Shown: positions 4,758 through 57,149 of the stretch, piece after piece
Layout: each line of letters opens with the position of its first letter
Numbering within the stretch: position 1 is the first letter of the stretch
Assembly: GCA_023213395.1 (NCBI GenBank)
Contig: CM041465.1
Span: 173,607,741-173,671,740 of the forward strand
Length of the DNA stretch: 64,000 bases
From: Cycas panzhihuaensis
Lineage: Eukaryota; Plantae; Cycadophyta
Direction of reading: 5' to 3'
Made by a program: the position numbers and the translations under genes
Notes under the pieces: model-generated
Told to the model about the DNA's origin: nothing
Seen by the model: the letters and a program-made list of their open reading frames with translations, nothing else
Databases searched by the model: none

Positions 4758-5587
4758 TGTTGGGACATAGTTTGACACGCTGGGCTATGAGGAGACCAGA
4801 GATAGGCTATGTAACCTTGGATGTGCAGTGCATGCATTTTGAGGTACGCATGAGGCAGAAAAGTGGAAAAAACAACATCCTGGGTACGTATGACAGGTGC
4901 GTACTTGAAAAGGTACGCAACACAGTATACGTACCTCCTGCAATACGCAAGCAAACAGAAAAGGTACGCATGGCAGAATCGGACAGATGGATACCTGGGA
5001 TGACGTCAGACGTACGGATGGTTAGAGACAACAATTAAGAAGGTTAACTAATGGTTAACAAAGAGGTACGCTTATGACTGAAAGAGTACGGTTATGATAG
5101 GGAGTCATAACCCTTCAGCCAAAGGACACCAAGAAGGTGCATTTAAGAGACTTCACAAGGATCATTTTGTTAGGGTGAGAGCCAAGTATTCAGACACTCA
5201 ATGGTACGGAAGCCAGTACGTATGACAACAGCACAAAGCAATGTATAATGATGTGTACCTTCCAGGTATGCATGTGATAGCAGCAGTGTATGTGGCTGGA
5301 ATGCATAGGGAATGCATTCCAACACCTTTTATACAAAGGCTTATTGCTTAATAAAAGAAGAGTTACGTGGAAATGTGGATTCTATGTGTTTTACGAAGAT
5401 TGGATGCTGAATATGTGCTGATTATTGTATTGTTGTGTGTAAACTGTGACATGATTGTGTGGAATTGTGAATAAATCTGTGTGATCTATGTGGATGAATA
5501 TGTTGACTGTATCCTAGACTAGACTACCTGTGTTACCTTGACAAGTGTACCTATCTCACGAGTGTAGTGAGATACTCAAAGTCAATA
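4758..5587 (+). repeat. 3' LTR of element 1 (~830 bp)
   Basis: Begins TGTTGGGACATA and ends AAGTCAATA (CA mutated to TA), matching both termini of the element-2 LTR. Confidence 0.85.
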
Positions 5588-20024: not shown

Positions 20025-23000
20025 TGTTACATGTCTAATCATGTGAAGTCGGTTTTTTAATGAGAGAGCATTAGACGTCAATTTTGAGAGAGAGAAAATA
20101 GGCCCAGCCTAGGGCTATAAATAGAGGAACAACATTCATTTGTAATCATCTTAGAGAATTTGCATTTGATTTGAAATCATGGCCTAGGGCCATTAGAGCA
20201 CTGTTGTGCCACTACGAGGAAACCCTTGCCTCAAAGAGAGCAACTATTTTTGAATTCTCATCTAAAATACTTTCATTTATTGTTATAATTCTGATATTAT
20301 TTATGTTAAGATGTTATTTTCTAAGTTATTTATGGTGTAATGGCTATATTTCTATTATAAAATTGTGGGCACACCACAACTAGTATCAGAGCCAAATTGA
20401 CTACAAAGGATATTTGCTTGGTGAATCTAATTCAAACATCAAAAACTGTTGGGGAAAGGTATTTCAAGTAGTAGCCACTTGTCGCAAGATGAATATCCAG
20501 GAGAAGCGATTGAGGGAACAACTTGACATCCAGTTTGGAAGAGTTTCTGCATAACTGGGATTGCATATCGATCTAGTTAGGAGGCACAACGTATTGCACA
20601 TAGTTGTTGATTTGGTAGGTGGATCAATCTTTGTAAGGGCAAACTTCTCGAACATAAAATTAGAGGGGCATCATAGAGATTATATGAGGAGATTATTGGC
20701 AATCTATAGGAGGAAAGGGACACAAGCAAGGGGAATTCAAGTGTTTATGGAGACACTGAAAAGCTTCACAGGAGAGGATGTCATCAAGTCATTGAGTAGG
20801 CTGGCCTTGGGGCAAACCACGTTTCAAAATGACTTTTTTCTTTTTAAAAAACAAAAAACAAAGAGCCTCATTGTATTAAAAGTGCAAAAGGAAAGAGATT
20901 ACAAAATTATTGGCATGACAACATTCAATTTCTCAAGTTATAAGCATTAGAATTATAAGAAGAGTATTAGAAAGAGATTGAGATAAAGGCTTTCAAAGAG
21001 AGGTGAGGTGAGGAGAACGTTGGAGCCATAAGCGAATTTCCATGTGAATGTGGATGGAAACATGCTTAAAGGTTGGAACAACGTCCTGAAAATGGACCAT
21101 ATTCCGAAATTTCCAGATCTCGTAGGGAGTAGACGATGAACTAGAGCTCTAGAAGGTGGAGTCTATTGTTGAGCCATTTGTGTGTGAGAGACCAACTTCA
21201 GTTAACAACGAATTGGAATGGAGAAACTTGAGGAGTAGCAAAAGCAATGAAGCCCTAATCAAGATCAAAGATTTGCATATGAGTAGCCCCTAACTTACAA
21301 AGAAGGAAATGATTCCACCAAATGTGATCGAAAGAATCATTAGGGAGACCACAGCCAAGACTGAAAGACTATCCCTAGATATGCCATGAGATCCAGGTGT
21401 CCCAATGGATGAAAGCTATGTAAAGTATGCATCAATGAGTGGCCTTGTGCTTTGAATGGGCTTTGTTCCACCAAATCCAATCCCAATTGGCATCAACTTG
21501 GACCTGACGCAAACTGTGCTAGTGTCGATCATAGTAAAAGTCCTTGGGATCAAAAATTTAAGTTCGAGATAAAACCAAATACATTCCTCCTGTTCTAGCT
21601 TCCTTGTGTAAACAAGAGGCACGACCTGCTACAACTCGAAAGAGAGGTGGCTGACACCCTAAATTAGGTTATTGTCTAAAAATCCATTGCCATCCATAAT
21701 CAACGAAGGGAGATCCTTCCACTTTTTATTATGAAAATCGTGAAAATGAGAAACTCGAGTAAGTTATAAATAGAGTAGAACTAAAGAGAGCACTAGGAAA
21801 GCTTCACTTTGAGCGAAAGGTCGCATGCCAAGGGGGAGCCATTTATCAGTCCAGAAGTGAACGTTAGAACCTTTGAGACTTGAGCAAAGAATAGTATTGA
21901 ATTGCATGTGGTCTTGTGCTCTGAGCATAAGATTCTAGACCTTGAGCCTTTAATTGTAGGGCACGAGGAAACAAGCTGCATTTTAGTTTTCAAGGAGTTA
22001 TAGTATTTCCTGCACAAAATTTCAGCCCACTTATCTTCTTCATGCATCCAAAAATCCAATACACATTTGGCACCTAGAACCTCAACCATTGAAAATGGAT
22101 CCCTAATACCAAGGATACCCCAACCTTTATGACCCGTAATAGTGCTCCATTTTATAGGCTGATAGAAACAAGACTCCTAAGAAGATGACTTCCAAAGAAA
22201 GCGAGCAAGCATCCCCCTAATTGCTAAAAAGACAACCTTCAAAGCCTCCAAGAGAGACATAACAAAGTTTGGCATTTGGGTTGGAGTGGATTCTATGAGG
22301 TTGCATTGCCCTACCAGATTCTGTTGCTATATAGGCCAAGCCTCCAACTTGGACTTCATCTTAAGAATGTAAGGGCACCGATCAAAAACTTTTACTCAAT
22401 GAAGCCTAAGAGGCACACCAAGGTATTTGATAACAAGAGAGTCTTCAATGATAGGGATATGAAGCAAAGACGCCAGTCACTATTTAAGAGTCATGGGGAC
22501 TGCATTGAAAAGAAGAGTTGATTTGTTATAGTTTGTTGATTGTCCTGAGGCCATGCAGTAGATATGCAAAGCTTGCTCCCAAGCAAAAGTTTCCACCATT
22601 GTAGACTGGCCCATAAGGATCATATCATCAACAAAAATTTAATGTGTAGAATGTTCCACACCATCGATAAGCATACCATGCAGGACACCTACACTTTGCA
22701 ACCAATTTAGGAAAGAAGAAATCCCTTCAACAACAATGACAAACAGATAAGGAGACAACAGACAACCTTGTCTAATGCCATGGCTAATAGGAAAGAAGCA
22801 AGCAATGGAGCTGTTGATTTTGATAGCCATTGAGACAGAAGAGAGAAGACCCTTAATCTAGCATAGGTGGGCCCAGTCAATACCTTTGATCCGAAGCATA
22901 GCCAAAATGTAGTCCCACTCAATACTATCGTAGGCTTTATTCATGTCAAGTTTAAGAAGTGCGGGGTGCTTTTGATAATTTATGGAGTGGAAAGCTTTGG

Positions 23001-30791: not shown

Positions 30792-33700
30792 TTTGCACTT
30801 TAGTCACCTATCCTCTTCACCTCGATGTTGTCCTTGACACGCGTTCAAGGCTAACCTTACTAACTTGTTGCTACATGTTAGTGCACCCATACACATATTT
30901 TGGAAAGGAAACACTCAACACAAGCATTCTCATACACATTGCACACATGTTTTCTTCGTAATTCATAATCCCAATAAACAATAGCCAAATACAGTGTTTT
31001 ACCATTGGGTATGCTTGTGAGTAGAACATCTCTCATAATAAAGAGAATGACTTATGACTCAATGAATTGGCTCTCATACTAAAACCAAGGTGAGAATACT
31101 TATTTATGCCCTTTTTACAACCTTTTTGACATTACGGTGCAACCATCACATATGACCTTTGACTTTTTCAAAACAAATCATAATTACCCCCTAATAATAA
31201 CACCTTTTCTATATGCCTATACACCTACACAAACACTTCCTGCTGTAGTCGTTGGAGTGGCAAAGAATTGTTTCCTCTTTACTATTCACATTCCGTTCTA
31301 GCCATTCTTGTTCCCTTCAGACTGCCCTTGTTTTGCGGTAGTCCATCGACTATTCCCCAACAGATAAAATGTTGAACTATAAACATTCCAGTCATTATTA
31401 CGGTTGTTCCAACCATTCCACTGTAGGATTTTCACTATTTTGCACTCACTTTTGCCATTCCCTTGGTAAAGTTATTCCTGAAGCTATTCCCAACTACCCA
31501 AAGGGCCCATGTGCTAGTTTCCATGCATACAAAATGCAATGATATGAGCGTGCAAGTTTTCGATGTATTTCGTTTATTGAACTAACCATTATATGAATAC
31601 AAGTAATTAATGTGAATCTTTTTATTATACTTGCAAATATGGGGAAGGAAATAGAATGCTATTATACTTGCAATTTATTTTGGATGCCATGATATATGAA
31701 GGGGAATGTGTGTTTAAATTCATAATAAGCACACCAATGAATCTAAATCTAAAACCCCAAATTGAAAACATGAAACCATGGAATCTACCCAACTATTATG
31801 AAATGTGTGAAATGAATCAATGTACCTTAAGCACTTGGAAATGAAACAAGGTTCATTGTGCACTTGGAAGTCCCAAAGTGCATGGAGTGTTTAGGAGGAG
31901 TAATTCACTAAGTGTGTGTCGCTAAGTGATCTCTTGAAGGTAAGTGACCATGAGATGGGTTACACTCTTATGAAGGAATGGGTATGTGGCCTATGAAATA
32001 ATCAAAGAGTAAAGTGACCAATATATTAATGGTGGCTTGATCTCTCATAGTTAGTGATTCGAAAAGAATGAGTTCACATTAGAGAACCCACACTCACTAG
32101 TATTGGTTAGATGAGTCTTAAGACACCCTTGAGACATTAGTCACTAAATAGATAATTGATTATCCATTAGAAGGTGTTTCTATGGTAACATTAGCCGCAA
32201 GTCACCTTAACGAATTGTCATTTGTGAGATAAATCCTCTGTGTATCAAAAGGGAACTGTCTGTTGATCAAAATATACTTCCATTTGTTGGAAAAAGGGAC
32301 TTGTGTGTTGGGAAATGGCCTTAAATGATTCCAAACAATGGGAGAATAATCGCCATGTGTCAAGATAGCATCCGTGTCTTGGACACCATTCCTATATCTC
32401 GTGTGTGAAAGCACGAACACAAGATGGGCAACAAAGTTAGGATATACTATGGGGCATGGTTCTATACTTGGGCTAGGGGCAATGCATGAGAATGACTCAT
32501 AGTGGATTATGTCATATGGAAACTTATCATTCTATATCTATTCATAAACTCACCCCTCCTTTTTGAAATGATCAACAAGGAAACCAACTTAAACCTATAG
32601 CCATTAAATGCAAATTCGGTCTTTTTAAGAGAGAGATTAAGAAGTTGATTTTTAGAGAGAGAAAAGTAGAGCTATAAATATAGGAGCATTACTCATTTGT
32701 AATCAGTCTTGCAGAATTCATATTTTGATTTGGACTAATGGCCTAGAGCCATTAGGGCACGCTATGCCATTTGGGAGAAAACCCTTACCTTAAAGAGGGC
32801 CATTTTACTATTGATATTTCAACAAATTATTATATTAACTTTTGTTACAAATGTGATAATATTCTGTGATATGCTATTATCCTTGAAATTATTGTGGAAA
32901 TCTATTCTGATGTATGATGAGATGTTAATATCTAAATGCTTTATGTTGTTATGTTATTATTTTTTGTCATCAATGCATGGGTATCACCACAACTAGTATC
33001 AGAGCGAAGAATAAAATCTGCAAATGATCTACTGTCAAATTTGTGACGATGCTTGATGATACAAGTGGAGGGAAATAGAGTGTTATAGATCCAACAAGTA
33101 GAAGCCAAGGGATTTAGGATTGCAGGGTATCAACCCTGTTCTAGCAGAGTCGTAAACTACCAACAAACTTGCATCTAAGAATTGTCTACGATCTAGAAGG
33201 GACTATCAAATTCTAAGCTAATCATCATTGAACCAATGCTTGGCATAAGAGACATTACATCGCATGTGATGCAAAAGATCATCATTTTGAAGATGAGCCT
33301 ATGAGGGGGATTGAGATCCATAGCATAGGTCGATTAGGATGGGTAACCTAGACGTGTTGATTTCTGCATGTAGATGCAACTGGAAGAGGCGTTTGGGTAA
33401 CTGGTTACCTTTTGCGTTTTGTGTTTGAAGCGAAGTTATTATTCAGGAGGATTAGCACACCTAGTCGGGGGGGGGGACATCTTCACTTGTAGTCCATGGG
33501 GGCCTTTGTTAAACCTTATGTTTACATTTTAAGCCTATGTACTTTATTTTTCATGTAATATTTGTACTTTTGTACTTTAGAGGTGACTTTTCACTTAAGT
33601 GATAGAGTGCACACCCACATTCTTTCCTAGTGACACAACATTGTCACTAAAGGGTCAAATGGACCCCCATGCACTTTTGCTCACTTGAGAGCCCAAAAGG

Positions 33701-36700
33701 ACACATGTCCTACATGCAAGGCATATACCTTGGATGCTTGCCACTTGTCAAACATCTAACGCCTTAGGTCTCTCCTTTCACTCTATATATTGAGACCTCT
33801 TCTCATTATTCTCATATAGAGTTGGAGTTGTATTGTTATGCTGCCAGTTTGCTAATCAAATTGTTATTCATTTGGAGGTTGGATCAATTCCAACTCCTCA
33901 TGTTTGGTATCACTTTGCTCTTTGTCTTCATGCTTGATCTTGCTCATGTTTGATCTCATATTTTCATTATTAGTCTAGTTTATCTGCTTTCTAGAACTAA
34001 AGTGAATATAGCTTCTAGATCTCGGGATTCTAAGGCCACTTGGCCATTTCTACATTTCGTATCAGAGCTAGAGGAGACTAGTTCCCTCTGTTCTAATTTT
34101 GTTTTGCTTAAGGGAGACTCAAGGTAGGCTCTACTACTCCTTGGTGACGACCTTCGCTCTCCGAAGGTGATCCAAGGCATGTTTAAGACCTACAAATTGC
34201 AGATCAAGCTTCTTGGAGCAGTGTTAAAGGCTGGAGTATGCACAGTTCACAGATCTAAAAACTTTTTCAGATAACCAGTTGAGGTTTTGAGCTAATCTAC
34301 TCAAGTTTTCTTGTGTTTTTTCACTAAAGCTTGATTTTTTCAGCAAGTTCTTCTTCTAAATCAGAGTGTTGGGGTATTATGTTGGTGTTTAGATCTCACT
34401 GACTGAGATTATTTCAAAGTTCAGACTTCTTGCAGGCTATGGATAAATTCTAGGCCATTTTCAACCCTCAAACCCCACTAAAAATTCAAAATCTTTGGTG
34501 CTGACTTTATTTAGCTTGTCTGGACTGTAAATCAGTCTAATAGTTATTGTCTTAGGCATGTAATTGGCCTGCACCAAAAATCTCTCAGTGTTGGGTGGAT
34601 TCATCACTATTTTTAGTGAATTTTACCTCAAAATTTATTGTTTTTCAATCTTTTTCCTCACAACAGGCTGGTTGTCCACATACTGACCCTACATGCAGCT
34701 GTAGAAGACTTCAATGAAGAGTTTCAATGATTAATACATAGGTTTAAAACCCTTGACAGCTGTACGACTCCAGTTTTCCTTCTCAAGGCCATGCGACCAG
34801 CCAAAAACTCATACCATCAGTTCTCTCTACACAGTGGACGAACTACCGTGAGATTTTAGAGGAAGTTGAATACCACTTGGGCGTCCGTCCTCCTAAATTT
34901 TCAGCTCGAACTGAGCTTTCTGTAAGCAGTATGCACCACCTGAGTCTCCACGGGAGTCGCCCGAGCCGCCAAAGCCACGCCGTGACTCAAAAATTGAAAA
35001 TTTTCAAAATATTTAAGTTTGAACTTTGTAAGACATACTTTATGTTATGTTTTTTAGAATATTCCTTAAAATATTCAACTTTTGATAAAGTTTATAAAAC
35101 CTTAATCACCCTCTTAAATCACTAAAAATCACTTTTTTAGTCAAAATTAATACTTTTTCAAGTGAGTTTTTAGTTGGAGACTACATTAGCTTTACCTTTG
35201 TGACAATAGGAACTAAATCTAGTATTTTTCACATTAGTAATATTTTTTCCTTTCTAAAGCCTTTTTAGTCATTTGGGACTTTTTTGGCTTAAATCTCCTA
35301 AGGAAAAAATCAACCTTTTTTTGGTTTTTGGAGTTTAAAATCTTCATTGTACTTAGTGATTTCATCAAATCACTAAAGCTAAAATAGTTGTTCATGTCTG
35401 GAGATTAAAATTACTTGGTTTAAGTCTTCAATCAAGGCTCCTTGTGTGGTGTTCTTGTTGCTCAAAGTTTCAAAAAAGGTTAAAATTCAGCCTTTGTTCT
35501 TTGGCACTTTTTGCCTTACTTAACACTTATTTCATGTTTGCAAGTGTTGAAGACATTGAAAAGAGTAATTTTTAAAGTGTTGTGACCTTGTTAAAGTGAT
35601 CCTCATCACTATTTCAAAACTTTTCTTAAGGCACCTTGCATGGTGACCTACTTCCCTTAGTCTCAAAAAGGACTTAAGGAGACTTGTTTCTTAATAAAAT
35701 CACTCATTTTTGTTGATTGTTGGGATTATTTTAAAGTCCCAACACTTGGTGCTTGGCATCTTCAGTTTTTGCAAGTGATCTTCCTCTCTCTTTCAAGCAT
35801 TAAAAGGAATCCACTTGCATTTTCAACACAAAGACTTTGGTCTTTCTTCATTGAAGCACTTAGCATCTTCTTCAAACTGCTTACATTTTCACATTGTACT
35901 CAAGCACTTTCTTTTACTTGCATGTGATAGCACTATTTCACACTAAAGTGCTCTTGTAAAACAAGTGTTCATTGTGATGTACTTGGTTGCTTCTCTTTGA
36001 AGCTCTTTATCATTGTAAACAATAAATCAAGCATCAACATCATCCAAATAAAATTTACTCTAAAGTCCACTTCAATCTTCTAAAAGTGAACTTTAAAATC
36101 AAGTAGGAAAGGCCCGAAAAAGGTTCAAACCTTGCCTCTGAAATAACCTTAAGCTTGGTGCATTCCTTAGGGGACCAACTGACCATACAGTCAGTGCATG
36201 ACAATTAAGGTTGCTTGAGGGAAAGGAGGTTCGAAAAGGGTGTTATTGGGACTGTTAATCCCAGGGAAAGCATGATATGTCCATGCAGATCAACCCTACC
36301 TACCTTGTCCTAGATTTAACTTGCCCAACTATTGGATCTCCTCTATTGATCAGGGTTGGAGCAACTCTTTAGCCTAGTCCTCCACCCCTCATCATTCCAT
36401 TCAGTTGTTGGATTTTCTAGTAAGATTAGAGCTATTGGTTTTGTTAAAAGGTGGAACTTAAGCGACAAAAGCTTTGAGTTTCCAAGTTATATGCTAGCTT
36501 CAAGCCTTACAACTTTAACATGGCTACAATTAATATGCTAAATGCATGTACCATCAGATTAACATGACAAGACAACTATCAAGAATGGAAAAGGATCACT
36601 TAAAATCTCTTGATAATGAACAAGTTTTGGGGTTATGTTTCTAGAAGGATACCTCGACCTGTACCTATAGAAAATGATGATGGTGTAATTGTTCATCCTG

Positions 36701-39700
36701 ATGATGCTCTTGTTGCTACTTGGGAAGCCAAAGATGAAATTGCTTTGGCATTCCTACATATGATTATTGATGTTCATGTAGATTAGAATATTGTGTGTGC
36801 AAAGACTTCCAAGGAAGCATGGGACATTTTGTCATCCTTGTATGAAAGGCGAGATGAAGCTCGCATATTGATGGTAAAAGCTAAGTTGTATTCTGTAAAA
36901 TTTGTCAAGCCTATGTCGGCTTTTCTTTCCTCCATCAAGGAGGTATGTAATGAATTGAATACATTAGGTAGTCCTACTTCTAGAGATGAGCTTATAACAA
37001 CAATTGTCAAAGCTTTGCCTAAGGACTACAATGGTTTTATTTCTTCCACTACACGAGATGCTTCACTCAAACAAATGTCTTTCAATGAATTTGAAAGCTC
37101 GTTGCTTCAGGAGGAGCAGATTTACATCAAGGACAATGATGACGAACCATCCACATTAGGGGCATTCACGACCAAATCAAAGGCCAAGCAGAATCCCAAA
37201 CCTGCACTTTAAAAGCAGTTTGAAAACATGAACATTGGATCCTCAAAGGCTAATGTTGTTTGTCATTATTGTGGCAAAGTTGGCCACATAGCACCTAATT
37301 GTAGGAAGAAACAAGCAGATCTTCAACACACACGACAGTAGCAACAGCAGCCACGTCAGAAAAATCAAAGACAACAATTCCAACAACGTCAACAATTCCA
37401 ACAGCAACGGTTTCAGCAACAAAAGTAGCAGCAACCCCTCGATGAAATCAAGGTGCCTATTGAAGAGGTCAAAGAGAAAGGAAGGGTTTTAGAGGTGGCA
37501 ATCAACACCACTTCAATCAGTTTGCAGATGAGGACAAACTATTTTGTGCTTATCATACATCTAAGGTTGATCAAACTTGGATCATTGACTCTGGAGCTAC
37601 TCAACACATGACTGGAAGTGAAGAACCTCTTTGCGACATCAAGGAAGGGAAAGATCAATCGGTGACCTTTGACAATAATGAATCTGTTAAGGTTTATGGC
37701 ATAGGCACAATCGCTCCATTCCATTCTCCTTCCAATCCTTCCTCTACATTTCCTAATGGCAATGCCTATTTCATACCTTCCATGGAGAAGAGCTTGCTAT
37801 CTGTTAGCAAATTAGACAAGCAACAGATGAGCATTTTGCTCAAGAATGGGAAATGTGTAATAAGTGACAAAAATGACCAGGTAGTAGCTATTGGATATGA
37901 GTATCATGGCCTCTACAAATTGGATGCTAATAACATAATACTTGATTCTGGTTACTCTGGTTCCATTATCACTCAAACTTTGTCCAAGATGCAACTTTGG
38001 CATCAACGTCTAGGCCACTTGAGCTTAGACAATCTCAAGCAGATCGTGAACAAAAACATGGTACATGGGCTTCCAAAGATGTATGGCACAAAATGTCTTT
38101 GTGAAGCATGCATAATGGGGACACAACATCGCGTGCCTTTCCCTAAAGGCAAAGCTTGGCGTGCATCATATCCTTTGCAATTAGTACACTCAGATTTGTG
38201 TGGACTTATGTCCACCGCATCCTTTGGAGGAGCTTTGTACTACATCTCCTTCATTGACGATTTCTCCCATAAAGTTTGAGTTTACTTCATCAAGCATAAG
38301 TCTGAAGCATTTCAAAAGTTTAAGGAATTAAAGCTTGAAGTGGAGAACGAGTCTAGCCAATCCATCAAAATACTAAGGACAGACAATGGAGGTAAATTTA
38401 CTTCAAAGGAATTCACCTAATTCTGCAAGGATAATGGCATTCGGAGACAACTTACTATTCCTCACACTCCTCAACAAAATGTAGTCTTCGAAAGAATGAA
38501 TAGAACTTTGACTAACAAAGCCAAAGCAATGATACATGCAAAAGGACTCACTTGAGCTTACTTGGCAGAGGAATTCCACACAACTGCCTATGTGGCAAAT
38601 CGAAGTCCAACAACAACAGTCACCGACATCACACCAAATGAGGCATGTTCTCGCAAAAAGCCAACTGTCAGCCATTTGAGGACTTTTGGCTGCACTGCTT
38701 ATATGCACATTCTGAATCAGCAAAGAACTAAATTAGACAACATAGTCTAAAATACATCTTTGTAGGTTATGCCATTCATAGCAAAGCCTACAAGTTGTAT
38801 GATCCCATTAGAAAGAAAATGCATCTTTCAAGAGATGTAATCTTTGCTGAAGAAGATCACAAGGAGTTGGATACAACATCCATCCAACACCCCATTGACA
38901 AAGGCAAAAAGATTGTTGAGGCCTTTCTTCCCTCTCAATCTTTAACTCCCTGTACATCATTTGTACATGTTGGACCATCCACATCATCAGAATTGGCTCC
39001 ACTTGATCCTAGCACATCTTTTGTTGATCAACCACTTAGACCAGAAGATCTTGAGGTTCAAGTTACATCAATAAAAAAGTTACCAAAATGGTATACTCAA
39101 ACAGTGTAAGACGGCCAGATTGTTGAAGGAAACAAACCAATTTTGCACTTATGGCTGAAGTGCTTTGTGTTGACGAGCCTTTCACTTTTAAGGAGGCTGT
39201 TGACTTCTGCTGGGGTCTTATTACACTTACGAGATACCTCTGCTCACTTGTCAAGGTTACACAACGCTATAGTCTAGTTTTAGGATACTGTCAACATGGT
39301 CATTCACATATTCCACATACATTCCATATATAATTGACAGAATGGTACACAGCAGTACAGAAATCAATACATACTCAACAAATCATCATCACAACACCAA
39401 GAATACACCAATTTCCACGTAACTCTTCCTTTTATTAAGTCAATAGTTCATTTACAGAGGTGGAATGCATTCTGAGCATTCCAAGTAGCATACGATCTTT
39501 CATTACAATGCGCACTGGAAGGTACTTATCATACGGTGATGCTCCAAATGGCTATCATGCGCATCGCTTCCCGCACCTTTGCGCACACGATATCCGGCTC
39601 TCACTCGAGAGTATACAATATGATTGACTCACTCGGCTCTCCTGCGGAATGCTCCTCAAACCATCATTAAATATGTCCCTTTCATCCCTTTTCGGTCAAA

Positions 39701-40487
39701 CGTTATGACCCAAACTCATAACCATACCTGTTTGTCACCAAGGTACGCTTTCAGTTTAATGATTAGTTATAGAGTTTAAGTAATGTCTCTTACGCCGTCG
39801 TGACGTCCGTGACGCACGTCTGGCAGCCCCTGGGCTTCCACCGGTCCCGTCCCCGCCATGCGTCGCCTGCTCGGTTACGTCCGCCACCGGTACGCATCAT
39901 GCATACCCGCCTGCACGCACCGCCATACGCACCTGCACGCTGATTTCTTCAAGCTTCACCTTGTGCGCATTCTGTATGGTCCGTACTTGCATTCCTTTGG
40001 TCAATACAAGCTCGTATTCCGTCTTCCTCGAGGCCTATGTGTCACAATATGTCCCAACATCTATCCGGGTCAACATGATTGGGTTGAGCATCCTTGCTCA
40101 ACAAAAATTCAAAATTTGGGGTATTCCTCCCCTCTCTGTCTAAGGTCGCTCCTGCCGCCTCTACTCACGCTTCTACGCCATTCTTGGTTAATAAATCCTC
40201 ATCTATTGGCGCTTTGTTTTGTTTGACTCTCCTTGATTTTCCGTATGATGGTATATCTTTCCTCCATGCTTCACCATATTGTTTATGATATGAGTTACGG
40301 TTGTTTTTCCTGCTTTTTAATTTTTTGTATTTTATGTTACATACCGAATCGAATCACGTTCCGCTATCAAGGCAATTTGATTTTGCCTCAACTTCATGCA
40401 ACACGCTATGGTACAACCAACTGATTCGGCTGGTAAGTTGCTCCACCCTAGTTGATATAGGGTTTCAGTTTACTACCCTTGACCATT

Positions 40488-41642
40488 TCAGGTAGTAGCT
40501 GGCCTGATAGTTTCTTCAATCGATAGTGTCGCTCCAGACACCTTCTCAATCCTATATGGGCCCTTCCACTGCATCTTCAATTCTCCTTGGGTTGTTTGGG
40601 ATTTGTTGTCGAATCGCCATACTCGACCACCCTTCTTGAAATGCGATGTCTTGTCGTGGCGGTCGTGCCTTGTCCTTTTCCGCCTTTTCCTTGGTGTGGT
40701 ATGCTTTGTCGATTTCTTCTTATGATCCCTTAATTGGTCTTCTCCTAACCAATGTTCTCCACAATGTCTCAAATGGGAAATTCCATATAGTGGTTCTCCA
40801 TAAAAGGGCTTCACATAATCTCCAACATATTCTCCATGATTTCTATCTTTTGGAGTGGCAACTATTTCGGTCACATTCCGAGAAAGTAGGTTACATCTAT
40901 AGGATGAGGGGTTGACTTCATAATTGTCCCGTAGCCAATAATTCACAAATCTCATCTCGTTTTCATCATCTGAAAAATTGTAAATTTCTCCAAAATAGGT
41001 CAGTTCTTCTTTCTGGTAATGGGTCGATGTTGCAGGCTTCTCCGCAGTATGATAGAGGTTTTCTTTGTCACATGAAGAAGTTGTTGCTTCCCTTACAACG
41101 GTTGTACTTGATCCGTTGTCAGGTATCACCTTAATGGAGTTCTTCCCCAACATTGGTAATACTACTTTATTTCCTTCATCTGACAAGGTAAAGGTTACGT
41201 CTTTCCAACTTTGGAGACATTGGGTTTTGTATAGCCATGGTCTCCCCAATAAAGCTGGATACGGAGTTGCACCTTTCTCCGTTTCCACAATCGTAAAATC
41301 AATCTTTACGACAATTCCTGCCACATCCACCTTGGTGTTGGTCAGTTTTCCCATGGGTCGTACCAATAGCTCATTAGCCAACTTCAGCGAATAAGTCGCT
41401 GCTTCCAACTTCGGGCTTCCCAATTTACGCCATGTTGCAGCTGGTAACACATTTACTGCTGCACCTCCATCCACAATTACTCGAGGAAATGTTTCTCCCA
41501 ATACTGACATGGTTACCATTGGATCCATGTCGAATGATGGTATAACTTGTTTCAAACTTTTGGTAATTCCCTTCTGTAACACTCCTCCTTTGATCCAATC
41601 AATAACCTGAGACAGAGGAATAGTTAACTGCAACTGTTTCAC
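40488..41642 (-). CDS. Retroviral-type aspartic protease fused in frame to the integrase C-terminal GPY/F segment
   Basis: Open 384-aa frame: IVDGGAAVNVL...LLGRPWL, then HFKKGGRVWRFDNK...GELKMQWKGPY. Confidence 0.75.
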   Translation of the reverse strand: MKQLQLTIPLSQVIDWIKGGVLQKGITKSLKQVIPSFDMDPMVTMSVLGETFPRVIVDGGAAVNVLPAATWRKLGSPKLEAATYSLKLANELLVRPMGKLTNTKVDVAGIVVKIDFTIVETEKGATPYPALLGRPWLYKTQCLQSWKDVTFTLSDEGNKVVLPMLGKNSIKVIPDNGSSTTVVREATTSSCDKENLYHTAEKPATSTHYQKEELTYFGEIYNFSDDENEMRFVNYWLRDNYEVNPSSYRCNLLSRNVTEIVATPKDRNHGEYVGDYVKPFYGEPLYGISHLRHCGEHWLGEDQLRDHKKKSTKHTTPRKRRKRTRHDRHDKTSHFKKGGRVWRFDNKSQTTQGELKMQWKGPYRIEKVSGATLSIEETIRPATT

Positions 41643-43723
41643 TAGATTCTAGATTGTCCATCAATAGCAACATTCTGGGAATATCTTCTGCTGGTAATCC
41701 TTTAAACAACTCTTCCATTTGCACCATTTGGGGTTTTGTCGTCAGTTCTTCCAGTAGTTTTTTTGGCTCTTTTTGTTTATTTTTCCGCACATAAACATAT
41801 TTTGTCTCCGGTTTACCCATTGGTAGTATATTCTCCTCCCGGACTAAACCATCTAACACTTGTTTCGCTTGTTTGTATCGATCCATCTCTGTTGGGGTGT
41901 TTGGATATCCTTCATCCAATTTCTCTTTTTGTTTGTTCTGCAATTTCACATTCTTCGTTTCTGGCACGATTGTCATCAGGTTAGTCGCTTTAGCTTTACC
42001 CTTACAATCCTCCGTTTTGTGGTCGCTTGGGCCACAATTACTGCATACGAACGGCTTCTGTTCGTATTCTTGCTTCATTGGGCATTCGGATTTCCAAAGG
42101 TCTGAATCAGACAAATGAGGCATCTCCCCATCGGTTGTTTCTTCCTCGAGGGTTCTGGTGCGCCCCTCGTTGTATACACATTCCAAGGTGGGTTGCCTCT
42201 TCCCCGACCTCGACCTTTGAATGCTTTTCCCCTGGAATTGTAGAAACAATCCTTGGTTGTATGGGTATCAACCTCACATATGTGGCACCACTTCTCCTGT
42301 TGGTGCGTCGCACTGTTTTTTAAGTTCAGATCACATTCTCGGGTGGTATGTGAGTTTTCTTCACAGATATGGCACCACTTGGTTACCCTTCCAGTGTGCT
42401 CTTTCTTCTTGGGTGTCTCTTCCTCTTCCCGATTATTCCTGATTTTCAATCTGGCTACCTCTTTTCTTAGTGCCTCCAATTCCGACTCCTCTTCTGCTAC
42501 CCCTACCTGGCAGAAGGGTCGATTATACTGGTTCTGCTTCAATTCTCTAATCTCATCTTGCAATCTTAACAGCAAGGAATCTTGTCCTCCTGCTTGGGCA
42601 TCCATTTCCATCTCGAAATCTAATGCCATATCCTGAGCATTCTTAAATGACTTTAGCGGATGAGCATGCATCATAGCTCGCAACTTCTCATTCAGCCCTC
42701 TTACGAAGTAATTCTTCATGTTATGATCCGTGATCGTTTCATTGATCATGCTCGCTGCAATAATCTTCATTTGGCTAATGTGAGTTAGGACGGATTCTAC
42801 TTACCTCGATTTCGCAGTCACATTTCCACGACTTCATTATCATGAAACTTTTGGAATCTCTCCTCAAACGCTTTCTTAATCTTTACCCATGGCTCATTTT
42901 TGTTTATTTCCTTATACCAAGCCAAGGGTACTCCTCTCAATGTACAGGCGAAGCGTGTTTTAATTTCATCTTCGTCCGTAATCTTTTTGACATCAATGAG
43001 GTTCTGAAAGAGATACACATGCTCTGCTACGTCTGAAGTATCATTAAAGATTAATTTCCCAAAGTCTCTATAGTCGTCCATTTTGGGAGATTGCAATCCC
43101 CCACCGATGGTGATCTTTCCTCCTCCGCCTTTTGGGGATGCACCGAGTAACTACTACCGTACTATCTTTTCCAAACAACGGATTTTTGAACGGAGTTTTT
43201 ATGTGTATAGGTTCCACTACACCTGGAACTTGTATAGTCAATGGTGTTACCGTAATGTAAGATTGATCCGATCCCCTTTCTGTCGAATCTTCAAAAGTCG
43301 CCTCGTTAGCTTGTTTTCCCAATATGCCGAGGGACCTTCCTCCGCCTTCTTATCGCTGTCACCTAGGTCCTTCGGGCTGTCCTCCACTGGTATACTTCCC
43401 TCTGTTAGAATCTCTTTATGTTTTTCATCCACTTTAGGTTTCCCTTCAATTTCTGGGCTAAACAAATCATCTCTGATAGGGGCTGGTGTCAGTACCATGT
43501 GTTCGCCATGGGTTTCCTCTTCCTGAGGTGTCTGGGCTCCACTTGCCTCAGATCCTTCAACGGACTGTCCCTTAGTCTCGTTGTTTTGGGAACTCAACCT
43601 CCTCGCCCTTCTGAGTTTTGCTTCTTTTGACCATCTTAGTGCCCTTTGTCTTCTGGTTTCCTTTTCCTTAGGTGAAGTATCCTTCTCGGGCTCTTCCAAC
43701 CTTGAAGGCCTCTTAGGTGGCAT
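41599..43723 (-). pseudogene. gag of element 2 (capsid plus several CCHC knuckles), frameshifted
   Basis: FACTLRGVPLAWY...FEERF, YFVRGLNEKL, CHICEENSHTTREC, CHICEVDTHTTKDC and CSNCGPSDHKTEDC. Confidence 0.85.
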
Positions 43724-43848
43724 TGGAAGGTCCCCTGGCTGCCGGTGGCTTAGTTACAGCCCGCCATCACGGCGACCAGGTCCTCTGCCCTTTACACATT
43801 CTTTTTCTCTTTGAAACCCCTAGGCCCTGTCCCTCCTCAACGGACGTA

Positions 43849-43861
43849 GGCAACGGAACCA
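43849..43861 (-). promoter_or_regulatory. Primer-binding site TGGTTCCGTTGCC, complementary to the plant cytosolic tRNA-Glu 3' end
   Basis: Lies 1 nt inside the 5' LTR boundary. Matches the recalled tRNA-Glu 3' end ...GGCAACGGAA-CCA over 13 nt. Confidence 0.8.
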
Positions 43862-46800
43862 ATGTTGACTTGGGAGGTGTCTTATTACACTTACGAGATA
43901 CCTCTGCTCACTTGTCAAAGTTACACAGCACTATAGTCTAGTTTTAGGATACTGTCAACATGGTCATTCACATACATTCCATATATAATTCACAGAATGG
44001 TACACAAAGATGTAAATCAATACATACTCAGCAAATCATCATCACAACACCAAGAATACACCAATTTCCACGTAACTCTTCCTTTTATTAAGTCAACAGT
44101 TCATTTACACAGAGGCTAGAATGCATTCCTGAGCATTCCAACAGCATACAGTCTTTCTGTTACAATGCGTACCTATAAGGTACTTATCATACAGTGATGC
44201 TCCAAATGGCTATCATGCGTACTGTCTCCTGCACCTTTGCGTACCCGTGATATCCGGCTCTCACCCTCGAGAGTATACAATATGATTGACTCACTCGGCT
44301 CTCACACTGGAATGGTCCTCAAAGCACCATTAAATATGTCCCTTTGATGCCTTTTGGATGAAAGGTTATGACCCAAAGTCATAACCATACCTTTTTGTCA
44401 CCAAGGTACCCTTTCACTTTAATCATTAGTTATACACTTTAACTAATGTCTCTTTAGGTCCATACGTCCGTACGCACTCGCCTCCTGTGCTTCCACCGTC
44501 CTGCATCGTCATGTGTACCGCCTGCTCGGTTACGCTCCGCCATGGTAGATACCGCCATGCGTCTGGCCTGTGCACGCACTGCCATACGCACCTGTAATGT
44601 TGATTTCTTCACTGTTTCACCTTGTGCGTACCTCTGTACGGTCCGTACTTGCATTCCTTTGGTCAATACAAGCCTGTATTCCGTCTTCCTCGAGGCCTAT
44701 GTGTCACAATATGTCCCAACAGAGGCTTCTAAAAATGAAAATTGGAAGGCTGCCATGGATGAAGAAATCAATTCTATTGAAAAGAATGGAACTTGGGATT
44801 TGGTCGAATTGCCTAAACACAAACAGGCAATCAACTGCAAATGGGTCTACAGGACCAAATTCCATTCTGATGGTACACTTAAGCGCCAGAAGGCCCGCCT
44901 TGTTACAAAAGAGGTACAAACAAAAGGAAGGCATAGATTATGAGGAGACTTTTGCACCAGTGGCTAACATGAACACCATCAGACTCATCTTGGCCTTAGC
45001 AGCTCAATGCAAATGGCTGGTTTTTCAGATGGACATGAAAAGTGCCTTTCTGAATGGCGATATTCAAGAGGAGGTATACTTGGAGCAACCTACTGGTTAC
45101 AAGGTACAAGGCAAGGAGCATTTAGTTTGTTGCCTAAAAAAGGCATTGTATGGCTTGAAACAAGCTCCAAGAGCATGGTACTCAAAGATTGATGATTACT
45201 TTTGAGACATGGGTTTCATCGATCTACTTTAGATCCTAACTTGTATATCAAAGTTGGGAAAGACCATGCCATTTTCATTGTCTTGTATGTAGATGACTTA
45301 GTGATCACTGGCAATGAGACTAAGATGGTACATATTCTCTAGGATGACTTGAAGAATTTCAAGATGACAGATCTTGGACTTCTCCATTATTTTTTAGGCT
45401 TTGAGGTATGGCAACATCTAGGCTATATCTTCATCTCCCAAGCTAAATATTCTTGGGACATTTTGCAGTGGTTCAGGATGCACGATTGCAAACCGACACC
45501 TACACCCATGGAGAATGGCACAAAGCTTACTCTCAATGAGGAAGCTGAACCAGCAGATCCCACTCTTTATCGGCAGTTGATTGGGAGTCTCATTTATCTC
45601 ACCAACACTCACCCTGATATCTCATTTACAGTTGGGATTTGCTCTAGATACATGTCTCAACCCAATCAGAAGCATTGGAATGCAGCTAAATGCATACTCA
45701 AATACATCAAAGGCTCATTGCAACATGGCCTTGAGTATGCACATGACGAAAACTTCACTCTGGAAGGATTCTCGGATTCTGATAGGACAGATTGCTAGGA
45801 TAGCAAGAGATCAACCTCGGGTTACTATTTTACCCTTGGTTCAACAATTGTTTTGTGGAGTTGCACGAAGTAACCCAATGTTACCTTGTCTTCCATCGAA
45901 GCAGAATACAAAGTTGCAGTCAACGCAGCTTGTGAAGCTATCTGGCTATGACAAATTCTTAGGGAGCTTGGACTTTAGCAAGATCACCCCACCAGGATTT
46001 ATTGTGACAATCAAAGTGTGCTCAAGTTGGCCAAGAATCCTTTCTTTTATGCAAAGACCAAACATATTGAGGTTTATCATCACTTTATCAGAGAGCATGT
46101 GCAAAGCGATGAGATCAACCTTCAATACAGACCAACAGAGCAACAGACAACAAATATCTTTAACAAGCCACTCGGCAAAGAAAAATTTGTAAAATTTAGA
46201 GATGGTCTAGGGGTCCGACTTAACATTGTAAACAGTAAGGGGGGGTGTTAAACCTTATGTTTACATGTACTTTTGTACTTTAGGGGTGACTTTCACTTAA
46301 GTGATAAAGTGCACACCCATATTCTTTCCTAGTGATACGACATTGTCACTAAAGGGTTAAATGGACCTCCATGCACTTTTGCTCACTTGAGAGCCCAAAA
46401 GGACACGTCCTACATGCAAGGCATAGACCTTGGATGTTTAACACTTGTCAAACATCCAATGGCTTAGGTCTTTCCTTTCACTCTATATATTGAGACCTCT
46501 TCTCATTGTTCTCATATAGAGTTAGAGTTGTATTATTATGCTGCCAGTTTGCTAATCCAACTACTATTCATTTGGAGGTTGGACCAATTCCAACTCCTCA
46601 TATTTGATATCACTTTGCTCTTTCTCTTCATGCTTGATCTTGCTCATGTTTGATCTCATATTTTCATTATTAGTTTAGTTTATCTTCTTTCTAGAACTAG
46701 AGTGAATATAGCTTCTAGATCTTGGGATTCTAAGGCCATTTAGCCATTTCTACAGCCTTGTGTTTATAGGATTGTTATTTTTAGGTCAATACAGGACTGT

Positions 46801-54489: not shown

Positions 54490-56762
54490 TGTTAGAACTA
54501 GCAACAGCAACAAAACTACTGCTGACAAGTTAAATATGTAGCTAATTTAGCTTTCTCGTGTGAAAAATGTGGGAATATTAATGCTTTATCCTATGTTAGG
54601 AAACTTTATGTAAACTGAGTGTTAGGCGTTATAACCCCCTCTTTGTATTTTATCAACACTGGTCACTCATGTTGACAATTGTCATTTATGTATGTATCAA
54701 TTATGTAAAGTACTTGTATATAAGAGAGTACATCTCTCATATCAAACCAATGAAGAAATTAGTTTCATTCTCTTCAATTCAGTTTAGTCTAGTTTTTCTA
54801 TCATGGTATCAGAACAGGTATGATAGACTAAGTCAAGGTAGAACAAAGTCAGAATGAGAAGGCATAAAAAGATAAAATCAAGCGAAGAAGCAAGAAGATA
54901 AAAATCTGAAGAAGGAAGATCAAGATCAAGTGCCAAGTGAAATCGTACAGCATTGTATGAAACTGTACGGATCTGTACGAATGGCTTTTTGAAGTGCTCA
55001 GATTGAGACGAAAATTTACCAGCAAGGACGTCTCACTGAGTAGAGTAGGCTGGTCCAAAGCCACTTTTGCAAATTCGGTCTCATTAAGCAGGAAAACAAA
55101 GAAAAACACCCATGCAGATTTGGAGCTTGAAGAGCAGCTTTCTCTCAGTTTTTTTCAGTTTTCAATCATGTTAGTAGACTTAAAATGATCTTTTCATCAT
55201 AAGCTTTCCGTTGAATGTAAAATTGCAAGATTTGGTTCAAGATTTTGTGAGTTATAAGCAAAATCATGGTTCAAACCCTAGTCACACCTCTAGTTTTAGA
55301 GCCTTTATTTTTGCCTGTCTGGAACTCCATTTGAAAATCTGACTTTAGATTCCTATGTACAACCTGATTGCCTTCAATTTGAGGGAGTTTCATTAAATTA
55401 TGTACACCAGTACTTTTGACCATACATTCGTACAGTTGTACGGACCAGAGCTGCAACAACCATTCAAAAGTTTCTAGTTATTGTTCTTGCCTTCTAAAAC
55501 TTCAAAATGGCCTCAATCTATTCACTAGGTGAGTCAGACAAGTTGACATACTCAAATTACGCTCCATGGAAAATTAAAATGAAAGGACTTCTGATTGCAA
55601 AAAATGATTGGGAAATAGTCACTGAAAAGGAAGCAAAACTGACCACTGGAGGTGCAACAAAAATCAGTTGGGAAGAGAGAGATAGGGAAGCCTTAGCCAT
55701 AATCACCCTATCCATTACTGATTCAGTCTTGACCCATATTACCGGAGCCTCTACCTCTATTGAAGTATGGAATGCCCTAACTTCTATATTCAGCCAAAAG
55801 AATGAAGCCCACATTATTGAACAGCTTTATCGACTGCATTTACGAGAGGCAGAATAGGTTACTGATTTCATCACCAAACTAGCGAAAATTAGAGGTAGTC
55901 TAGCCTCTACAGGAGAACCTGTGTCAGATACTAAAATTATCTGCCCGGTACTCAATAAATTGCCAAAATCCTTTGATAATTTGGTGAATACTCTTACTCT
56001 AGAGGGACAAGCTCAAAATGTGTCCTTCGATACTTTGTGTGGCCACTACTTCAAGAGGAACAAAGAGCTCGCAGGTATAAAAAGGGAGTCGACGTTGAAG
56101 AAGCCTTTGTCTCAAGACTTAGAATTAGTGAAAGAGGAGGTCAAAGTGTAAGGGGAAGATCATTTGAAACAAGCAACAGAGGAAGATTTTTCAGAGGAAC
56201 AAGAAGAGGTAGATCACCTGATATTGAATATGCTACCAGTGTGGAAGAACAGGTCACATCGCAACAAAATGTAGAACAACAAAAAACTGCCCATGTTACT
56301 ACTGTGGAAGGTATGGACACCTTTCAAGTAACTGTTTCTACAAAAGATTTCATATCTCTAAGGGTAAACGGGTTGAAGGCAACTATAGCAAAGAACAGTC
56401 AAAAGATGAAGATGATGAAGAGACTGCCTTCGTTGTTGCCTTAGTATCATCTGTCCAACACAATGAGAATTGGTTTGTTGACTTTGGCGCATCAAATCAC
56501 ATGACAAGTAGAGAAGACTGGCTTAAACCTTGCAAATATACCTAACAAACAAGACAATGGAGTTGTGTGATAATCACCCTTTGGAAATCAAAGCCAAAGG
56601 AACCATAGAAATCCAGATCAAGAATGAAATTATAAAAATTGGAAATGTGTTGTTTGTGCCAACCATGAAGAAGAATCTTTTTTTGGTATCATAGTTAAGA
56701 AAGAAGAAACTTCGAGTGATATTTCATGAAAATGGAAAATGCTATATCCTTGATATGAAAAA
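54490..56762 (+). mobile_element. Ty1/Copia element 5' part ('I'): LTR, PBS, gag and protease; interrupted at 56763
   Basis: LTR at 54490-54803, TGGTATCAGA at 54804, gag from 55507 (NYAPWKIKMK, LNKLPKSFD, two CCHC), PR WFVDFGASNHMT. Confidence 0.9.
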
Positions 56763-57149
56763 TGTTAGAAATAATGTACATTCCCATTTCATTTCATTTA
56801 AGTTTATTTTAGGTTCATTAGAATAATAGCTCACATGGAATATTCTATATGAGAATATTCTAGAGAGAGAGGATATACTTGGTCAAAGTTCTAGAAGTCC
56901 AAGATACTTAAAACATTTATGAGGTGGTTTGAGCACACCAAATTTCATGGGAGCGTTAGAGTTTGTTGAACCAGCTCGTATGTTTAGACTTAGTGTAGAG
57001 TTATAAATATGTATTTGTACCATTCATTCTTTTTAATGAGAATTGGAGAGTTTAGTCTTGTTGACGTATCATCACCTCTTGCTTCATTTTGCATGTGATT
57101 TATGTTGTAAGGCTAGCTTATATCCCTCATTCTGACATGGTATCAGAGC
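56763..57149 (+). repeat. 5' LTR (56763-57137) plus tRNA-Met PBS; unclear whether it belongs to the downstream Gypsy
   Basis: TG...CA followed immediately by TGGTATCAGAGC. Confidence 0.8.

Follow-up and report, generated by a model that had tools for sequence, protein, structure and literature searches.

Complementarity to the anticodon and D arms of primer tRNA-Glu in the long terminal repeats of a cycad Ty3/gypsy family: possible captured copies of the primer

Introduction

Long terminal repeat (LTR) retrotransposons make up the bulk of conifer genomes and of many crop genomes. The U3 region of human immunodeficiency virus type 1 (HIV-1) contains a site complementary to the anticodon stem of tRNA-Lys3, and extended contacts with the primer tRNA are known from the yeast elements Ty1 and Ty3 as well as from retroviruses. 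In Ty3, the primer-binding site (PBS) is bipartite, with a 5' and a 3' part (Gabus et al., 1998; reviewed in PMC5371799). Pairing between tRNA-derived RNA and retrotransposon RNA has also been described in plants: sites for 5' tRNA-derived fragments (tRF-5) in Arabidopsis Gypsy transcripts are conserved among angiosperms (Martinez et al., 2017, PMC5605234). Here, we analyze a 64-kb stretch of the Cycas panzhihuaensis genome (contig CM041465.1, positions 173,607,741 to 173,671,740, hereafter the window), which holds two related Ty3/gypsy elements, elements 1 and 2, whose LTRs carry segments complementary to tRNA-Glu(CUC), the tRNA to which the PBS of element 2 is also complementary.

An earlier reading of this stretch, made from its letters alone (the sequence-only reading), had noticed one of these segments, proposed that it takes part in a bipartite priming or strand-transfer system, and knew of no such description for plant Gypsy elements. 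A limited literature search likewise found no description of extended primer-tRNA contacts for a plant LTR retrotransposon, and the papers on conifer repeats that were consulted contained nothing on tRNA-Glu priming. As detailed below, the similarity to tRNA-Glu is real, tRNA-specific and fixed in orientation, and it is present in two diverged subfamilies. Its origin in copies of the primer tRNA is the explanation that we favor, with evenly balanced confidence.

Boxes complementary to tRNA-Glu in two diverged LTRs

Element 2 (39198..44721, minus strand) is a complete, non-autonomous Ty3/gypsy derivative, recognized from its LTR pair, target-site duplication (TSD), open reading frames and Pfam domains. 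Its 5' LTR (43863..44721, minus strand, 859 bp, TG...CA) and 3' LTR (39198..40059, minus strand, 862 bp) are about 85% identical. The PBS, TGGTTCCGTTGCC (43849..43861, minus strand), starts 1 nt past the 5' LTR, the intervening base being a T, and all 13 of its positions are complementary to the 3' end of Arabidopsis tRNA-Glu(CUC), CCA included (GGCAACGGAACCA); tRNA-Glu is also the primer that the sequence-only reading had named. Element 1 lies on the plus strand, and its 3' LTR (4758..5563) is about 70% identical to the LTR of element 2 where the two can be aligned. Its PBS is not visible because, of its two LTRs, only the 3' one falls inside the window, the 5' LTR and the PBS lying beyond the window edge.

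Three boxes complementary to tRNA-Glu, named A, B and C, were recognized in these LTRs. Box B corresponds to the anticodon arm. In the 5' LTR of element 2 (GATATCCGGCTCTCACCCTCGAGAG, 44249..44273, minus strand), the RNA is complementary to tRNA-Glu nt 24-46 at 21 positions and has a 2-nt insertion; in the 3' LTR (GATATCCGGCTCTCACTCGAGAG, 39589..39611, minus strand), 20 of 23 positions match, or 22 of 26 if the box is widened to 39586-39611. Box A is a second copy of the anticodon arm in the 5' LTR (ACTCGGCTCTCAC, 44293..44305, minus strand), identical over 13/13 positions to the complement of tRNA nt 26-38 (nt 27-39 in the numbering of the 76-nt printed sequence that the window scan uses). Its counterpart in the 3' LTR is an 11-nt match at 39631-39641. 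Box A sits in a local duplication of about 38-44 nt; both the duplication and box A are missing from element 1, which has a single copy of box B (5173..5195, plus strand, 20/23 to the complement of tRNA nt 19-41). All the strings quoted by the sequence-only reading, including the shorter form of this last box (GGGTGAGAGCCAAGTATTC, 5173-5191), were found again at their positions, and its match counts of 20/23 and 17/19 were reproduced.

Box C was not part of that reading. It is located 70-90 nt upstream of the PBS and occurs in both elements: in the 5' LTR of element 2 (43934..43953, minus strand) as the complement of tRNA-Glu nt 8-29 (19 matches, one 2-nt gap), which comprise the D arm and the beginning of the anticodon stem; in the 3' LTR of element 2 at 39270-39289 (minus strand); and in element 1 (5509..5527, plus strand) in a gapped form that has 17 matches to the complement of tRNA nt 7-29. 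On the sense strand of the LTR, box A occupies positions 417-429, box B 449-473, a conserved block about 630-657 and box C 769-788, the LTR ending at 859. This order on the element sense strand, namely anticodon arm, D arm, then LTR end and PBS, is that of a reverse-copied tRNA. Boxes B and C overlap over tRNA nt 19-30, and they are thus separate partial copies of the tRNA rather than one tuned site. No U5-tail-like sequence was found upstream of box A.

The two elements lie on opposite strands (element 2 minus, element 1 plus), and in both the element RNA carries the complement of the tRNA, as the sequence-only reading had stated for the genomic RNA. The complement of the element's own primer tRNA thus stands on the element sense strand, as in a read-through fossil. 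The predicted RNA duplexes with the tRNA reach -40.6 to -43.5 kcal/mol for box B, versus -21 to -26 kcal/mol (standard deviation 3.6) with shuffled tRNA, and -28 to -30 kcal/mol for box C, versus -18 to -20 kcal/mol.

Specificity of the similarity

The counts given for the boxes rest on tRNA-Glu(CUC) of barley, Arabidopsis and poplar, which stand in for the host's own gene. The barley tRNA is printed in full (PMC1904245), the Arabidopsis one over its 3' 56 nt (PMC3221849) and the poplar one over its 5' 20 nt (PMC4189724). Monocot and eudicot sequences agree across nt 22-46, and the plant tRNA-Glu(CUC) sequence on which the sequence-only reading relied is supported by the three printed ones. 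No tRNA gene or tRNA-like RNA was detected in the 64-kb window by Rfam or ARAGORN.

When tRNA-Glu was compared with both strands of the whole 64 kb by Smith-Waterman local alignment, the best five sense hits all fell in the LTRs of element 2 and the best two antisense hits in the LTR of element 1. Scores were 31-32 at 39589-39611, 29 at 44249-44273, 26 at 44293-44305 and 31 at 5173-5195 of element 1, while box C scored 28 in both LTRs of element 2 (39270-39289 and 43934-43953) and 21 at 5509-5527. The antisense strand of the LTRs gave only noise against tRNA-Glu, with scores of 12-17. In a window-wide control, the top score was reached by 2 of 150 shuffled tRNAs; within a single LTR, the best score was reached by none of 2000 shuffled tRNAs (element 1: 2 of 2000). 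When the scores of the two best non-overlapping pieces within one LTR were added up, 0/2000 shuffles reached the total (z 6.3-7.2). The boxes therefore match tRNA-Glu better than they match shuffled tRNAs, one of the points on which the earlier proposal could have failed. Another was the presence of the same motif in families with other PBSs: the other LTR pairs of the window, which have PBSs of the initiator methionine tRNA (iMet) type, gave no tRNA-Glu hit above noise. A third was a tRNA-Glu that departs from the assumed sequence at the box positions, which the printed plant tRNAs do not.

Abundance and variation of the family

The stretch occurs in sequencing runs of at least 12 organisms. 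For four of these runs, from four organisms, Logan contigs were aligned on the 5' LTR and PBS of element 2. Between 1,000 and 8,000 short contigs per run map to this region, and the family is therefore very high-copy in at least four organisms. Variation was read from 40 of the 63 variable sites of this pile-up. Among these, the PBS and box A show no alternative letter, and box B has one variant, 44268 C>T, which is the majority letter in two runs, while the remaining two show it rarely or not at all. In all, 2 of the 62 box positions are among these sites, versus about 3.3 expected, i.e., there is no excess conservation of the boxes.

The unit formed by boxes A and B varies in copy number, with one copy in element 1, two in element 2 and three in at least one contig, which has a 41-nt backward joint (44295->44255). 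In addition, a loose end at 44267, formed by 23 contigs of one organism, here organism B, reveals a subfamily that diverges inside box B after ...CTCACCCT.

Comparison of elements 1 and 2 gives a similar picture for box B, of which 12 of 25 positions are identical (70th percentile, the LTR average), only GTGAGAGCC being invariant. Between these two elements, box B is thus no more conserved than its LTR background. Over the aligned positions, the boxes agree with the tRNA at about 85-91%, versus about 84% per lineage expected from the 70% identity of the LTRs; this comparison is a hand estimate and is biased upward, as local alignment trims to the best part. The boxes are therefore close to the neutral-decay expectation for the time since the two LTRs diverged.

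The LTR block on which the two elements agree best (TAATAAAAGG...ACGTGG, 44064..44092, minus strand) is flanked by boxes B and C. This block, which may be a TATA box or a poly(A) signal, has no variant among the 40 sites. TATA-like candidates are found at LTR positions of about 385 and about 632 and, depending on the one that is used, the anticodon-arm box would be placed in U3 or at the start of R. Directly 5' of box C, ACCATGTTGAC (43954..43964, minus strand) forms an inverted repeat with the LTR end and PBS start (GTCAACATTGGT), for which the evidence is weak (p 0.015). The fold of the whole leader is not significant (z -1.15), and we therefore do not claim that the LTR end and PBS form a hairpin with the sequence flanking box C.

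Some observations of the LTR and of the contigs stand apart from the boxes. A perfect hairpin is conserved in the LTRs, at 44362-44387 in the 5' LTR of element 2, at about 39700-39725 in its 3' LTR and at about 5095-5120 in the LTR of element 1. It reads GGTTATGA(C/G)-TTTGG-GTCATAACC in element 2 and GGTTATGA-TAGGGAG-TCATAACC in element 1; the stem is kept while the loop differs between the elements, and the hairpin is among the best-conserved blocks of the LTR. About 100 nt of the 5' LTR (44473-44571, LTR position about 150-250) are covered by no contig from any of the four runs, and this segment is either private to the element 2 copy or hypervariable in the family. Nine metagenome loci (L001-L009) retrieved through the 19-mer GGAAGAGTTACGTGGAAAT were set aside as chance identities: they share only this 19-mer with the LTR, and eight of the nine have a common repeated sequence around it that is unrelated to the plant LTR. 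Scans of viral contigs gave no match.

Architecture of the two elements and other elements of the window

Element 2 has the structure of a Ty3/gypsy element: an LTR pair bounded by TG...CA, a PBS adjoining the 5' LTR and a 5-bp TSD, GCCTC in minus-strand reading (44722..44726, with its partner at 39193-39197). It is nested within a plus-strand Copia element. Its 3.8-kb interior encodes gag, with its CCHC knuckles, and a fusion of a protease with an integrase C-terminal tail, while reverse transcriptase, RNase H and the integrase core are deleted, which makes it a non-autonomous deletion derivative. The fusion is seen in an open frame of 384 amino acids (40488-41642, minus strand), in which, at the site of the deletion, the protease continues into the C-terminal (GPY/F-like) tail of the integrase. 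Element 1 has the RVT_1, RT_RNaseH_2 and rve domains in gypsy order (reverse transcriptase, RNase H, integrase). The 3' internal parts of the two elements are 88-91% identical, whereas their LTRs are only about 70% identical where alignable.

Just past the PBS of element 2, the heptamer TCCGTTG is repeated 4 nt downstream (…TTCCGTTGCC TACG TCCGTTGAGG…; 43835-43861, minus strand). The same heptamer is also the 5' acceptor strand of tRNA-Glu, and the repeat may be a small PBS duplication or the trace of a fusion between the PBS and the tRNA 5' end.

Strings of the iMet PBS type (TGGTATCAGAGC, at most one mismatch) occur six times in the window, versus 0.25 expected, at 18434-18445, 20381-20392, 32994-33005, 34057-34068, 54804-54815 and 57138-57149. 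They mark four or more additional LTR elements, and several of these are nested around element 2. Other candidate matches to tRNA-Glu were rejected. What looked like another Glu PBS, at 56593-56605, has no LTR end close by and is a chance match, the hits at 20382-20410 correspond to a degenerate iMet PBS, and neither 53532 nor 49266 is more than noise, the string being absent from the partner LTR of 49266.

A proposed origin in captured copies of the primer tRNA

How did sequences complementary to the primer tRNA come to lie within the LTRs? In length and specificity, the similarity goes far beyond what point mutation could have produced; we read the boxes as descending from copies of the primer tRNA. 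In the explanation that we favor, they are pieces that the family's own reverse transcriptase copied from its primer tRNA-Glu(CUC); these pieces would have been fixed in an ancestral LTR and would now mostly be passengers. We infer both the capture route and the mostly-passenger status; for this explanation as a whole, we see the case as evenly poised.

Mechanistically, the reverse transcriptase could run on into, or switch onto, the tRNA that is attached to its DNA, and the resulting tRNA copy could join the LTR once an LTR boundary moves. U5 comprises everything between R and the working PBS, so that a PBS shifted downstream of the read-through copy would place this copy within both LTRs. 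A shift of the plus-strand primer site upstream would have the same outcome for U3. A later local duplication could then have given rise to the A/B pair, boxes B and C could go back to a second capture or to an older duplication, and ordinary decay of the LTR would have led to the present layout. Reverse transcription of the attached primer directly predicts the complementary orientation on the element sense strand, and capture by the reverse transcriptase explains the origin of the boxes without calling on a function. The observations that we count in support are the specificity of the similarity, the orientation and order of the boxes, the overlap of boxes B and C, the varying copy number of the A/B unit, the average conservation of box B and the subfamily that diverges inside it, the lack of excess conservation of the boxes in the pile-up, and an identity to the tRNA close to the neutral-decay expectation.

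Several points weigh against this explanation. A contiguous tRNA copy, in register with the PBS or the LTR end, is absent from these LTRs: only partial pieces are present, at distances of 70-450 nt from the PBS, and at least one boundary shift as well as an insertion of about 300 nt must therefore be assumed. Neither a T-arm nor an old-PBS remnant adjoins box B, the T-arm-like continuation after this box being not significant (p 0.14-0.5) in element 2, in element 1 and in the loose-end consensus. Box C is among the better-conserved parts of the LTR: 19 of 24 positions are identical between elements 1 and 2, which places it in the top 8% of 24-nt LTR windows, and its one variant among the same 40 of 63 sites, 43945 T>C, reaches 87% in organism B and makes the box more tRNA-like. 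That the pieces are recognizable in both subfamilies of a fast-evolving LTR, with box C in a conserved block, fits some selection, and the D-arm box near the PBS may have been co-opted.

A possible multipartite primer-binding system

In a second explanation, the boxes would work. A single tRNA-Glu molecule would use nt 64-76 for the PBS, nt 8-29 for box C in U5/R and nt 24-46 for box A or B in U3, at the opposite end of the RNA. Along the lines proposed for Ty3, Ty1 and the HIV-1 U3 site, such multipartite pairing would stabilize initiation and join the RNA ends for minus-strand transfer. We regard such a working system as possible but rather doubtful. The two explanations meet in a tripartite system (PBS, D-arm box in U5/R and anticodon-arm box in U3) that would have been built by co-opting captured primer copies, a proposal that we put forward only tentatively; pairing would then take in almost the whole of tRNA-Glu, the T arm excepted, and would bridge the ends of the genomic RNA.

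The boxes and the PBS do cover three separate parts of the tRNA with little overlap, all on the RNA strand, and the duplexes predicted for boxes B and C are stronger than those with shuffled tRNA. Box C is within a conserved U5-proximal block, beside the short sequence that recurs in inverted form at the LTR end and PBS. This family has been extremely successful, its boxes are kept in at least four organisms, and Ty3 and Ty1 offer a precedent (PMC5371799). However, the conservation of box B does not exceed the background and the number of its copies varies, the two TATA-like candidates give different answers as to whether the anticodon-arm box is in U3, and the leader fold is not significant. 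In addition, known auxiliary contacts measure 6-12 nt, against at least 20 nt here, and opening the anticodon and D arms of a modified tRNA would be costly. The analogy with Ty3 and HIV-1 drawn by the sequence-only reading is apt for what the complementarity could do, while the average conservation and the variable copy number of box B speak against its being maintained for that role.

Less probable alternatives: targets of tRNA fragments, chance and Pol III promoters

Boxes B and C could also be landing sites for 5' halves or other fragments of tRNA-Glu that guide cleavage or repression of the element, as the sequence-only reading had suggested in passing. There is a precedent in Arabidopsis, where 19-nt 5' tRFs cleave mostly Gypsy transcripts (PMC5605234), and the boxes are on the transcript strand. 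Box C, however, corresponds to nt 8-29 and box B to nt 24-46, and neither covers nt 1-19 of the canonical tRF-5. Furthermore, a tRF site harms the element that carries it, so that targeting would be a by-product and not the reason why the boxes were retained. We consider this reading improbable.

Last, it is very improbable that the boxes reflect chance similarity or a tRNA-type RNA polymerase III (Pol III) promoter of the Helenus/TRIMp3 kind: while lone short matches of score 26 do arise elsewhere in the window by chance and tRNA-like LTR segments are known in Helenus miniature terminal-repeat retrotransposons (TRIMs; PMC10886601), none of the 2000 shuffles attains the two-piece score, the LTR measures 860 bp and belongs to a gypsy family with coding relatives, the GG of the A box is missing, and the antisense orientation of the tRNA-like strand relative to the element together with the absence of a B box excludes a Helenus-type promoter.

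Significance and comparison with known systems

If the boxes work, this family would provide a natural, very high-copy case of a primer that bridges both ends of the RNA, and it would show how such sites can originate when an element captures the sequence of its primer. Should the boxes be passengers instead, they would still record a route by which tRNA sequence enters LTRs and would provide family-wide sites complementary to abundant tRNA-Glu halves and fragments. Such sites matter for the prediction of small-RNA targets and for the annotation of tRNAs and short interspersed elements (SINEs) in giant genomes.

Among described systems, the tRF-5 sites of Arabidopsis resemble the boxes in that the 5' part of a tRNA finds its complement in Gypsy RNA. 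They differ in that they match nt 1-19 and need not concern the primer, whereas the boxes described here cover nt 8-46 of the primer itself. Helenus/TRIMp3 and Cassandra are comparable in another respect, as small-RNA-derived sequence is fixed inside the LTR in all copies (PMC10886601). In Helenus, this sequence is a near-complete sense tRNA-like unit with A and B boxes, carried by tiny TRIMs and not tied to the primer tRNA (PMC10886601). The boxes are, in contrast, antisense fragments without a B box that match the element's own primer and lie in 860-bp gypsy LTRs; a sense tRNA-like unit with A and B boxes in a miniature element is not what the element 2 LTR contains.

The extended PBS of Ty1 (boxes 0, 1 and 2.1) shares with the present boxes an additional complementarity to the primer tRNA outside the PBS, and the U5-tRNA contacts of retroviruses (the A-rich loop and primer activation signal of HIV-1, and the U5-TpsiC contact of Rous sarcoma virus) recall box C, which is likewise located upstream of the PBS. 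These Ty1 and retroviral contacts differ from the boxes in that they span 6-12 nt, lie within tens of nucleotides of the PBS and are backed by mutational evidence. A further likeness is with Ty3, which also belongs to the gypsy superfamily. Its RNA contacts the primer tRNA not only at the PBS but also at distant LTR-derived sites, the D arm being involved there as here. Ty3 uses tRNA-iMet and an 8-nt PBS, with T-arm and D-arm contacts that map to U3 and have been tested in vitro, while element 2 has a 13-nt PBS for tRNA-Glu and complements of the anticodon and D arms of at least 20 nt.

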